This document shows positions 896-48,183 of a stretch of DNA of 64,000 nucleotides, one piece after another (the first letter of the stretch is position 1; every line of letters begins with the position of its first letter). Source of the stretch: Diadema antillarum. Lineage: Eukaryota. Both the position numbers and the translations under genes were made by a program. Location: assembly GCF_040938485.1 (NCBI RefSeq), contig NW_027271164.1, forward strand, positions 2,108,001-2,172,000. The letters are read 5' to 3'. The notes under the pieces are model-generated. The model saw nothing but the letters and a program-made list of their open reading frames with translations, was not told the DNA's origin and made no database searches.

Positions 896-3800
896 CTGAT
901 CAGCTGTGTTACTCAGGTTACGGGCATCTACTCCCCTCAGACACTCGACAAGGATAGATGATGTAGACACGTCACAGCCCAACGCTAGGCCCAGATCTCG
1001 GGATAGCCGTCGTTCTCTGTCCGGGTCATCTTCGAAGGCCCAGCTACTGAACACATTCCCACTCTACAGCCAACGATAGCCAATATTAAAGGGATAGTGT
1101 GATGTGGTAAAATGAAGTTGGATCGACTACGTCAGCTGGAATATTTGTGTGTGTGTGTGTGTGTTTGTGTGTTTTGTTCAAAGTAATTTTATCGTGAAAA
1201 AGAGCGGCCTGATGTTGAATGAAATTCAAACAGAGAATATCATTAAAAAGTGTGCGTATATGTGTGTGCAAATGACACTAACACTGTGAAACATTTTATC
1301 AGTTTAACAGAAACAGAAATTAATGCAATCAACAATAGTATGTATCACATCACACGTTTTCTATCGCTATATGAGAATCAATTTTGTTATTATTATTATT
1401 TTTAGAATGGTTTATTAGGTAAAAGTTTGCAAAATCGTAGCCCGAAGGCTAAAATACATTGCACTGACAACTAGATACATTGAACTGTCATACACTACAT
1501 CCACATTAAAAATCACAATCAGTCATAAAATATATTGCAAAAAAGAAAAATTACCACATAATACTACACAGAAAAAAACCAAATCTATTCATACATCCCA
1601 ATTGTATAAGATTATATGAATATATTTCAATCAAAAATTCTTTTCCAAAAATATTCATATCTATAAATACTACAAAAAGATTCGGGCGTGTGTGTGTGTG
1701 TGTGTGTGTGTGTTAAGTTTGTCTGACATACCTGCATGATGGCTTGACTGAAGTAGGGTCGACTTAGTTTGGACACTAGGTGGAAACTGACACTGGCCGA
1801 GCCTGCACTCTCACCAAAGATTGTTATTCTGTCTTTGTCGCCTCCAAAAGCTGTAAAAATTGCAGGTAAAAAGTAACATTTTAAGCTTTTTACAAGATAC
1901 ACCAAGTTTTGTTTTTCGAGTGATTTCCAACATTTTGATTGATTAGTAGTTAAAACACTATCATAACCCTTTGTGAAATGACTTGAAATTATAAAGCACA
2001 GAGTATAAATGGACATTAAGTATTATCTTTAAATAGGTAGGCTTGCAATATATCAATGCTTTACGTAATTAGTTGTCTTTTTTTTTCTTACCTTCAATGT
2101 TTTCATAGATCCATTTAAGGGCTGCTGCTTGGTCGAGCATACCAACATTTCCCCGAGCTGAGTCATCCTCTGGAAATAAAAATGCATTTCATTGTTTGTT
2201 ATACACAAAAACAAACAAACAAACAAACTAAAAATACAACCCCCCAAAAAAGACAATACCCAGAACAAAAAACAAAACAAAACAAAATAACAACAGCGAC
2301 AAACAAACAAAAAAAGATGACAAACAACAACTACCACATTGCCTCAATCAGTTGTCTTCGTTTTCCTAGTCTCCTAGTTTTAGTATAAAAGAACGAGAAG
2401 TGAAAATCACATGTCTGTAATCACAGAATTCTACAAATTGCCTATCGCTTAGGAATAATGTCTGGCAACTTCGGAGAACAATAATGAGCAATGTCCCTAC
2501 TAACTCCACGGTCCTCTGAATGACGTTACTGAATGCGAAATAAGCTACCAAACAATGATTAGTGGGAAAAAATCTTCAGGAAGTGACAAATTGTATAGAC
2601 GTCAGAAAAAGACATACTATCGAGTATTAAAGTCATCGCTTTACCATAGAGATAACAGCTCATCTTACTGAAATTGGGGTTACAGGTTTTAGTTCCCATT
2701 CAATTGGCATGATATATTCATACTAACCAGTGGAAAACTGTCCAAAGATCGCTAGTCTGTAGTTGATTGCTACAACAATGACGTCACCTACAACAGCCAA
2801 TGGGACGCCGTAATGGTCATAGATCATTGCTGAGCCAGAGTTGAACGACCCCCCGTGAATCCACACCATAACTGCCATGCCTGAAGTCTTGAGTAAAACA
2901 ATGATATGAATGCCATCAAAAAACAGAGAACCACTGTATACTTCACATACTGTATTTTTTTTCAAGACATGCGTTTTTGTACTTATGCATTAACTTATTT
3001 TCTATTGACATTCGGTACCTGAGGGGCCCACATTCTACAAGCTCTGTCTTCTTAGTGGTCCCTCAATTATTCGAAGTTTGCGTATTGCTATCTTATTTTC
3101 ATCACTTTGATCTTTATGGCAATGTATAAGTAGTATAAGGTTCCATATTTCATACTCTCCTCAGTTTACTTTGTTTTGCTTATGAAACCTGATTCTCTGT
3201 TACCAAGAAAGGGAAATTTCTATGTTCTTTTCGAAAAATGAAATATAGCTTGAATTGAATTGAATTGAATTGAATTGAATTGAATTAAAAAGAAATGCTT
3301 ACATAATAATAATTCTATATCATTGTTACCATTGATTGTTCTTTCTTCTCTACATACCCTTGATGTCGGCGCGTAGACGTTCAGATAGAGGCAATCCTCG
3401 GAGGTAAAAAAGTCAAAAGTGTTGGTCTGCTCACAAGCAGGAGAAAACTCCGTGGCATTCCTTTCCCCTGACCATGACGTCATGTTTGTGGGCGGGGCAA
3501 ATCGTATGGGCGGGGCCGCGTAAGGTACACCCTGTAGGCATGATTAGCATCTTTCAGTCAGAAACATTAAAAACACACCTAATCAATATTAGATATGTAC
3601 AAATATTACTCCTCTGAACTTCGATATAACGTCCAATTTTCCTGTTATATACAGGTTGTACATGCCTTATTCGAGTCATAAATCATTGATGATAGCAATC
3701 TTGATGTACGGCAGTCGGTCGCAGGCAAGATAATAGGGAGCTTTAGATTTTAGACGCGCGGACGTTCAAAGGAAAAAAAACCATGATCTGAGCTTGCGCA

Positions 3801-46100: not shown

Positions 46101-48183
46101 GAATAAAGACCATGACCGCCGCATCGTTAATCTTTATCAGTCAAAAAGATATTGATAATTCATGTCTATAACTTTGTATTTCTTGTGGAATTATTATTCA
46201 TATCGCAGTGAATAACATTTACCACAGACAAAAGTATCACAAACGAATTTCGATTTTATATCTCTTTAAGATCTATAATGTTTGTTCCATGTTATAAGTG
46301 CTGTCTGGGGCAAATTATTTGTATAGGGCCCCATTTCTCTCTCTCTCTCTTCTTTCGTTCTTTAAAACAACAACAACAACATAATTTCGAAGACGTTGAT
46401 CTAGAGGGTTGACATTATATGATAAAAAAAGAATGATTAATTTCCTCTCCATAGTGTCTAACAAGACAATATAGTTTAATATGGCATCAACAGAACATAT
46501 CTGTCCTACTGAGTGGACGAAAAGTGATTGAAAAAAGGAATCTCTGAGACAAATCCATTCACTCTGAATGAAATCCTGAGTATCCAACGAAGGGCGATAT
46601 GCTTCTAAAGCTGTAACCCCGCCGTTTTGACACCGGCGAAAAGTGAAGCCAACAATATTGATCATAATTATTATCATACAGAGAGAGAGAAAAAAATAAT
46701 TGTCCTAGATGAATCCTACCTTTGGATTAGGAGCAAATACGTTTAGATACAGACAGTCTTCTGACATTTTCTCGGGAGCCGGGAAAAAGTCAAATACGCC
46801 TTGTTGACACACAGCTTCAAATTCCGTAGCGTTCCTTTCTCCTTCCCATGACGTCATATTTGTAGGCGGGGCGAATCTCTCAGGAGGGGCTGCATAAGGT
46901 ACCCCCTGTACATTTATAGACATTAAAGACGAATTACAACTAAACAAAGTCTGAGGTAATGATAATGCCCATGCCTCCATAGAAGTTCAGTCTTACCGTG
47001 AGGAGGGTTTTACTGTGGTTACAACATGACTAGATAAGCTTATTCTTCAACTCTAATGCATCCCAAGCAATTTCACCTCATTGGTAAACCTGTTCGCTAT
47101 GATTCACTTATTTACCAGTGCTGTAGTAATTGCAACGACTAGCATGAAACATCTTTAGTCATCATGACTATTTACAAATGTAAACGATGCTTAAAGAAAA
47201 TGGAGAGACTGTTGCATGGATCACTCGCCTGTAAGATAAGTCTTCTCAATGGGGCATTCTTACGGGTGCTGTTCGTTATTCCGAAGGTCCGTTATTCCAA
47301 AGGTTCGTTTATTTCGAATGTTCGTTAATCCGAAACACACAAATTTCCTATACCTAGAGGTTCGTTAATCCGAAAATGAAATAGGGTTCGCTATTCCGAA
47401 GGCTCGTTTATCCGAAAATGAAATAGGGTTCGTTATTCCGAAGGTTCGTTAATCCGAAAATGAAATAGGGTTCGTTATTCCGAAGGTTCGTTGATCCGAA
47501 GTGATATAGGGTCCGTAACGATCGAACCTTCGGAACGACGAGATTTGTTTCATTTTCGGATTAACGAACCTTATTTCATTTTCGGATTTACGAACCTTCG
47601 GAATAACAAACCTCACCACATTTTCGGATTAACGAACGCTCGGAATAACAAATCTTCGGAATAACGAACCTTCGGAATAACGAACCTTCGGACTAAAGAA
47701 CCTTCGGAATAACGAACCTTCGGAATAACGATCTGTAACCCATTCTAACACCTGCTGCAAGAATGTATACTACATGCAGTGTGCTTAGAAGTAAGAATGT
47801 ATACTAGTATATTTGGAAGTAAGCATGGTAAGGCTGTATTACTGCGCTAAGGGTTAAAAATGTAAACTGGTGTACTAAGAAGCACATAAGAATGTAGAGA
47901 TACTACATGGTGTACTAAGAAATGAGAATGGCTATCAGTGTACTCAGTGGAAGTCAAATAGACCTACAACTCCACTTAACAAAGCTGGCCCTTATTTTGT
48001 TTTTGTTTTTCAACTCACCAAGAAAACGTCGACATCTCGAGTCTTGTTGATGAACTTGTTTTCACTGAAAGTCACGGTCTTTCCTACCAGAGTTCCTTCT
48101 TTCACCATAACTCTCGGATTCTCAGCATTCACTGGTGCGAAAATGGCAAAAATTGCCAACAAAGTCCACAATAGCTTCATCAT
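40142..48183 (-). CDS. Cholinesterase-like gene D, 10 exons, ~603-604 aa, secreted, with WAT exon; closest paralog of C
   Basis: Exons 48183(or 48180)-48019 ([20 protein letters not shown]; not in the ORF track), 46905-46720, 46131-45972, 45523-45446, 44409-44291 (GESAG), 43590-43423, 42560-42115 (GFNKDEG), 41619-41425 (HGEEM), 41164-40983, 40257-40142. Triad intact. Confidence 0.93.
47264..47741. mobile_element. 478-bp palindromic MITE built of TTATTCCGAAGGTTCG subrepeats, intron 1 of gene D
   Basis: The left half carries the subrepeats forward and the right half reversed. GGGT..ACCC termini. 8-bp TSD ATTCTTAC/ATTCTAAC; the paralogous site in gene C has a single ATTCCAAC. Confidence 0.88.

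Follow-up and report, generated by a model that had tools for sequence, protein, structure and literature searches.

The window analysed here is a stretch of 64,000 nt from the genome of Diadema antillarum (contig NW_027271164.1, positions 2,108,001 to 2,172,000; in GCA_040938485.1 the locus lies on contig JBFRCO010000276.1, near 2.1 Mb). In a tblastn search with exon-sized open reading frames (ORFs), it is found to contain four collinear minus-strand copies (genes A, B, C and D) of one ten-exon gene. The encoded proteins have the cholinesterase fold and a C-terminal tail like the T/WAT peptide of acetylcholinesterase (AChE) and butyrylcholinesterase (BChE), and they lack the Trp that binds choline in those enzymes. 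The best reading of these genes, which is reasonably probable but far from assured, is that their products are non-cholinergic esterases that are secreted, have a pocket of the carboxylesterase kind and oligomerise by means of a WAT helix bundle.

A to D encode predicted secreted, N-glycosylated alpha/beta-hydrolases of about 600 residues that belong to the type-B carboxylesterase/cholinesterase family. Single exons have the conserved domain PF00135 (COesterase; 35-52 bits against a cutoff of 27), and the same domain is precomputed on the full proteins. The proteins have signal peptides, 6-8 N-glycosylation sequons each and seven cysteines, which follow the cholinesterase pattern (three disulfides) with an additional C-terminal Cys. 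In a PDB search, the solved proteins most similar to B are AChE, then BChE, then CES1 (CES1 E-value: 8e-76). Full-length B aligns to full-length Torpedo AChE (6EUC) from end to end, with the tail included and free of gaps. The AlphaFold2 model of C (pLDDT 93.6) has AChE and BChE as its best Foldseek matches (template modelling score 0.88-0.91, normalised to the target), and CES1 is ranked 44th.

A, C and D retain the Ser-Glu-His triad (in G-x-S-x-G, xDE and H contexts) and the oxyanion-hole glycines. As Ser, Glu and His are each conserved in 54 of 55 aligned echinoderm relatives, the family appears to consist of enzymes. The dN/dS ratio (nonsynonymous to synonymous divergence) between C and D is 0.19-0.29, which indicates purifying selection. 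A and D are predicted to be active serine esterases, and C is probably one as well. B is probably catalytically dead or impaired because it has Lys in place of the catalytic Glu and, in its serine motif (GQSAG), has also lost the Glu adjoining the Ser. Lys is found at the catalytic Glu position in none of the 55 other aligned echinoderm members. Non-enzymatic proteins are common in this superfamily and, with B in mind, A to D might be taken for proteins of the neuroligin or thyroglobulin-ChEL type, in which a cholinesterase-like domain serves binding or adhesion without catalysis. This is very improbable given the intact triads of A, C and D and their conservation across the family. Neuroligins are marked by loss of the catalytic Ser and by a transmembrane anchor; the Ser is present in all four window proteins, and neither the gene models nor the structure model of C includes a transmembrane segment, an extra domain or a hydrophobic stretch beyond the signal peptide.

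In true cholinesterases, choline is bound by a Trp (W84 in Torpedo AChE). The first disulfide (omega) loop, to which this residue belongs, is 28 residues long in AChE and BChE but only 15, 16, 19 and 19 residues long in A, B, C and D, respectively, and it contains no Trp in any of the four proteins, as a first-pass annotation made from the sequence of the window had stated. The HMMER alignment places a 9-12 residue deletion across the EMWNPN segment that holds W84, so the choline-binding Trp is absent because this part of the loop has been deleted. Gorge residues were read off a Torpedo AChE alignment carried across the family alignment of echinoderm relatives. Along with W84, residues Y121, W279, F288, F290, F330 and Y442 are lost in A to D alike, Y70 and Y334 are lost in most of them, and D72 is lost too. 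At the position of Y121, A has Asn, B has Arg, and C and D have Ser. Glu takes the place of Y442, and in A, B and D Leu takes that of F330; W279 has been deleted, and both F288 and F290 are substituted. W233 and W435 are retained in all four genes, W114 is retained in A and B (Phe in C and D), and Y130 and F331 are retained only in some genes. The aromatic-lined gorge, which comprises 14 residues in Torpedo AChE, has thus lost most of its aromatics in A to D. Their pocket would be open and carboxylesterase-like, with uncharged or non-choline esters as the expected substrates, and the proteins would be at best poor acetylcholine hydrolases. Carboxylesterases such as CES1 likewise lack W84 and the Phe pair of the acyl pocket, and their active site is open. 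Unlike A to D, they have no T peptide, their C-termini carry endoplasmic reticulum (ER) retention signals and they form the outgroup to the clades described below.

The tail of B, C and D is encoded by exon 10, which is 116 nt long, starts in phase 1 and follows a consensus acceptor. The intron that precedes the vertebrate T peptide probably lies at the same position. RefSeq joins exon 9 to exon 10 in its models of B and C and in the full protein of A; although the tail exon of A falls outside the window, its full protein (P0002) still terminates in a WAT-like tail. The pattern W-x6-W-x6-W occurs exactly three times in the six-frame translation of the window, each time on the minus strand at the 3' end of a gene and before its stop codon. 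The tails of B, C and D have PF08674 (AChE_tetra; E-values: 5e-5 to 2e-4) as their top Pfam match. Among all PDB chains, the D tail is most similar to 1VZJ_A, the human AChE WAT peptide (E-value: 0.0019), to which it aligns without gaps. W10, W17, M21, W24, F28, Y31 and C37 are kept, F14 is replaced by Tyr and Y20 by Glu. The first-pass annotation had aligned exon 10 of all three genes gap-free to the AChE T peptide and had listed the same kept and lost residues except for M21; these statements are borne out.

A profile built without vertebrate sequences, from the tails of 36 echinoderm proteins (of echinoids and holothuroids), matches only AChE and BChE tails in the PDB (1VZJ_A E-value: 8.6e-10; next unrelated match: 0.055). 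All 36 tails in turn match PF08674 at E-values of 0.01 or less, the best being 1.7e-9. W10, W17, W24 and C37 are invariant over these tails and Y31 is nearly so. The tail of C is predicted by AlphaFold2 to form a single helix (residues 569-596, pLDDT about 80-86), and the hydrophobic or aromatic residues at positions 10, 14, 17, 21, 24, 28 and 31 give the pattern of an amphipathic helix. Given the matches to PF08674 and 1VZJ, the end-to-end alignment with Torpedo AChE, the 36-tail profile, the invariant Trp and Cys residues and the predicted helix, homology of the tail to the cholinesterase T/WAT peptide can be regarded as solid. The C-terminal Cys of this peptide forms the inter-subunit disulfide in AChE and BChE. 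Strong constraint acts on the tail exons (dN/dS 0.10-0.19). In several contigs of 2-2.6 kb without introns, taken from sequencing-run assemblies of other echinoderms, the tail directly continues the catalytic domain, and these contigs are read as transcripts in which the tail is spliced to that domain. Two tail variants, W-x6-W-x6-W and W-x6-W-x7-W, are found in the family. The second subfamily (P0024, P0026, P0031, P0050, P0055 and P0061, from all five echinoderm classes) has the form W-x6-W-K-Y/F-x-D-...-W, and the one residue that it has in addition between its second and third Trp would put the heptads out of register with those of the vertebrate WAT peptide.

The combination of a short omega loop and a WAT tail is found in dozens of "cholinesterase-like" genes from all five echinoderm classes (Diadema antillarum, D. 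setosum, S. purpuratus, Lytechinus, Apostichopus, Asterias, Amphiura, Antedon and others), and the family spans sea urchins, sea cucumbers, sea stars, a brittle star and feather stars. D. antillarum has about 20 such gene models on about ten contigs. On a 1.26-Mb contig of this species, P0151, P0001, P0159 and P0282 form a cluster with 97-98% protein identity to C/D, which probably represents either the second haplotype or a segmental duplication of very recent date. A to D are, from their sequences, members of an echinoderm-wide family that is already annotated in RefSeq and not a new kind of system, and the special local cluster envisaged in the first-pass annotation has to be given up. Johnson and Moore, in a 2012 study of the invertebrate deuterostome carboxylesterase/cholinesterase family, reportedly analysed oligomerisation domains in 'intermediate' enzymes of S. 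purpuratus.

A tree was rooted on carboxylesterases (quick search; support by the Shimodaira-Hasegawa-like approximate likelihood-ratio test, SH-aLRT, only). Amphioxus ChE1, lamprey AChE, python BChE and arthropod AChE form a true cholinesterase clade (support 95). The window genes belong to a separate ambulacrarian clade (99), made up of acorn-worm esterases without such tails and an echinoderm clade (95) that shows class-specific expansions; the join between the true cholinesterase and ambulacrarian clades is weak (50). Within the echinoderm clade, A to D are in a Diadema-specific group of 14 rows that adjoins S. purpuratus 'cholinesterase 1'. This phylogeny, a check proposed with the first-pass annotation, places the genes outside the true cholinesterases, from which they differ in the 28-residue loop with W84, in the aromatic gorge and in clade placement. 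The term 'non-cholinergic' is reasonable because the W84 segment is deleted, gorge aromatics are lost and the genes fall outside the true cholinesterase clade. To this extent the earlier description of A to D as non-cholinergic esterases has support as a prediction.

Vertebrate AChE-T and BChE (1VZJ, 6EUC, 6I2T) share with the window proteins the fold, the three disulfides and, in A, C and D, the triad. In both groups, the final exon specifies about 38-40 residues, among which are Trp at 10, 17 and 24, aromatic residues at 14, 28 and 31, Met at 21 and, four residues before the C-terminus, Cys at 37. The window proteins differ from the vertebrate enzymes in their omega loop (9-13 residues shorter, with no W84), in the loss of six gorge aromatics and D72, in a much more acidic tail without Y20 and in their separate clade. 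Other echinoderm 'cholinesterase-like' paralogs are the same in kind (about 600 residues, a short Trp-less omega loop, a WAT-type tail and the same clade, with 95-99 support), and only the Lys of B sets a window gene apart from them. Nematode T-type AChE, unlike A to D, is a genuine acetylcholinesterase with the choline-binding Trp. It resembles A to D in being an invertebrate enzyme with a T-type tail (ACE-1 class; Dictyocaulus viviparus AChE).

The assembly that may be proposed for these proteins is modelled on that of the cholinesterases. The acidic amphipathic tail helix of each subunit would pack with three others, forming a four-subunit superhelix around a polyproline-II peptide. This peptide could be supplied by an echinoderm partner or, as in plasma BChE, by assorted proline-rich peptides. 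In BChE, neither ColQ nor PRiMA is needed for tetramers to assemble on various polyproline peptides, and the authors of the BChE tetramer structure state that the WAT/polyproline mode of assembly has so far been observed only in cholinesterases (10.1101/431288). Assembly driven by the tail would control secretion, stability or anchoring. Both tetramerisation and proline-rich anchoring are extrapolated from homology only and are speculative. Combinatorial heterotetramers are likewise speculation, for which the sole hint is that the probably dead B has a tail of the C/D type. It is doubtful that the WAT/polyproline tetramer is used echinoderm-wide for non-cholinergic esterases, with paralogs of matched tails co-assembling on an echinoderm PRAD-bearing organiser, among them the dead B after replacement of its 3' end by a tail of the C/D type.

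Several observations weigh against the reading of A to D as non-cholinergic esterases that oligomerise through their tails. One concerns their substrates. The relatives retrieved (about 270) and the top matches of two true-AChE queries include no echinoderm AChE with W84 and no echinoderm protein with the 28-residue EMWNPN loop, in searches not designed to find a single canonical gene, and some members of the clade could therefore still be working cholinesterases. These two W84-bearing query proteins, considered as candidate echinoderm AChEs, turned out to be a myriapod-type AChE and a rotifer-type AChE, and their top matches include no echinoderm. The members of the clade may then be the functional cholinesterases of echinoderms and bind choline esters through residues other than W84. 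This would fit their RefSeq names (cholinesterase or acetylcholinesterase-like), the rank of AChE and BChE as closest solved relatives, the retained T peptide and the cholinesterase activities routinely measured in sea urchins (PMC7922589). It is nevertheless unlikely, as W84 is deleted and six other gorge aromatics are lost in all four genes and the clade is separated from true cholinesterases with 95-99 SH-aLRT support. Moreover, dozens of copies with class-specific expansions resemble detoxifying or digestive esterases more than a synaptic enzyme, and the missing canonical AChE is, given the design of the searches, weak evidence.

The other adverse points concern the tail. The tails of B, C and D score 21.3-23.3 bits, under the PF08674 gathering score of 25, and the RefSeq model of D (P0284 / XP_071492945.1, 567 aa) starts at an internal Met, reads through intron 9 and leaves out the T exon. 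The net charge of the tail is -7 to -8 in B and D and -5 in A, as opposed to -3 in lamprey and python, and this far greater acidity, together with the replacement of Y20 by Glu, could alter or prevent PRAD-type assembly. No proline-rich partner of the tail and no ColQ- or PRiMA-like gene was identified, with no dedicated genome search made. The tail could instead be a relic of the T peptide that does not support PRAD-dependent tetramerisation and acts as a helix with a dimer-forming Cys, or as a signal for ER retention or turnover. The loss of Y20, the charge of the B and D helices, which would sum to roughly -30 on a four-helix assembly, and the broken heptad register of the second echinoderm subfamily are in keeping with such a relic. 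The proposal is improbable, however, in view of the invariant Trp and Cys positions and the nearly invariant Y31 over 36 tails and the low dN/dS of the tail exons. In addition, a nematode T-type AChE reportedly associates with PRiMA and ColQ of vertebrates (PMID 22027027), so the T motif works over large distances. Oligomerisation through a WAT helix bundle remains the preferred reading.

B appears to be a mosaic. In exons 1-8 it is other paralogs that B resembles most (P0160 and P0167, with 67-70% identity, as against 57% for C/D), whereas its last 98 residues have 89-90% identity to C/D and 57-60% to P0160 and P0167. The nucleotide identity of B to C/D is 87-96% in exons 9-10 and 60-74% in exons 1-8, and synonymous divergence (dS) is 0.34-0.45 in exons 9-10 and saturated in exons 1-8. 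The similarity of B to C/D ends no more than 5 nt from the borders of exons 9 and 10, and the introns and 3' untranslated region cannot be aligned. The mosaic may reflect an older recombination followed by decay of the introns or, equally well, conversion limited to the exons. B, though probably dead, would thus have taken over or retained the tail type of its active neighbours, which fits co-assembly.

The coordinates of the genes and their parts are given in Table 1. The models of B, C and D were assembled manually from splice contexts; each is a complete ORF of ten exons with GT-AG borders at all introns, and the proteins of A to D are 599-604 aa long. The B model is identical, residue for residue, to the RefSeq protein P0170, and the C model does not differ in any residue from P0281 / XP_071492944.1. 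The full protein of A is P0002 / XP_071492942.1 (602 aa), which has the serine motif GESAG and keeps the Glu and His. RefSeq names the A, B and C proteins "cholinesterase-like [Diadema antillarum]". A fifth tandem COesterase gene (598 aa) is found just past A on the same contig (L003:21141-29014), outside the window, where it continues the array leftward. The tandem array in D. antillarum thus numbers at least five genes, four of which are A to D.

Table 1. Positions of the esterase genes, their diagnostic segments and the assembly gaps in the window
Feature	Position	Strand	Description
Gene A, 5' part	1..5528	-	Starts at 5528; cut by window start in exon 7
Gene A, exons 1-2	5528-5367, 3531-3358	-	
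Gene A, exons 3-5	about 2887-2728, about 2170-2092, about 1851-1732	-	
Gene A, exons 6-7	1063-896, 81-1	-	Exon 7 cut by window start
Gene B	8113..18103	-	10 exons, 599 aa, signal peptide, GQSAG, His kept
Gene C	25842..36797	-	10 exons, 602 aa, GVSAG, Glu and His kept
Gene D	40142..48183	-	10 exons, 604 aa in own model, GESAG, Glu and His kept
B omega loop, Cys to Cys	16549..16596	-	16 residues, no Trp
C omega loop	35856..35912	-	19 residues, no Trp
D omega loop	46753..46809	-	19 residues, no Trp
B motif GSNKDKA	10796..10816	-	Lys in place of catalytic Glu (Torpedo E327)
B exon 10	8113..8228	-	T/WAT-like peptide and stop codon
C exon 10	25842..25957	-	T/WAT-like peptide and stop codon
D exon 10	40142..40257	-	T/WAT-like peptide and stop codon
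Mosaic segment, exons 9-10	B 8113-9009; C 25842-26515; D 40142-41164	-	
Assembly gap	5990..6144		Intergenic, between B stop (8113) and A ATG (5528), about 460 nt upstream of A ATG
Assembly gap	33974..34110		Intron 4 of C; 402 nt after exon 4 donor (34512), 169 nt before exon 5 acceptor (33805)

Directly past the exon 9 donor, the read-through in the RefSeq model of D (40906-40982) adds 26 unrelated residues. It may have arisen as an error of annotation, or it may be a genuine isoform comparable to the AChE-R variant. P0282, which is 98% identical to D on the 1.26-Mb contig, is annotated exactly as in our own D model, with the signal peptide and the T exon. A conserved R-type alternative C-terminus is unlikely because the sequences read through past exon 9 are unrelated among B, C and D.

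The window has 37.6% G+C and includes two runs of N (Table 1). Neither of these gaps touches the finding because both are noncoding, the coding sequence of C is continuous and equal to the RefSeq protein, and neither B nor D has an additional exon at the place that matches the gap in intron 4 of C; this gap leaves uncertain merely the length of the intron. Intron 5 of B has a retrotransposon insertion on the opposite strand, with a 506-codon ORF that encodes a reverse-transcriptase domain (11781-13298, plus strand; RVT_1 E-value: 8e-35). A second long ORF (63164-64000, plus strand) has no Pfam match. The plus strand at 57667-59114 has exons of a PARP-like gene, which has no relation to the esterases; they encode a PARP regulatory domain (57667-57933; E-value: 3e-8) and a PARP catalytic domain (58920-59114; E-value: 4e-8). 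A candidate PRAD gene at about 62.1-62.4 kb was rejected, as its proline-rich ORFs are translations of a C homopolymer and simple repeats. The low-complexity DNA at 62160-62365 consists of homopolymer runs (12 C, about 20 A, then 22 C) and a GGC/GGT repeat, and it gives proline/glycine-rich ORFs on both strands.

If the tails of these esterases do tetramerise, the WAT/PRAD system would predate vertebrate AChE and BChE and would not be tied to cholinergic function. A proline-rich organiser would then also be expected to await discovery in echinoderms. For sea urchins themselves, "cholinesterase" biomarker assays may be read over a background of dozens of cholinesterase-like esterases.

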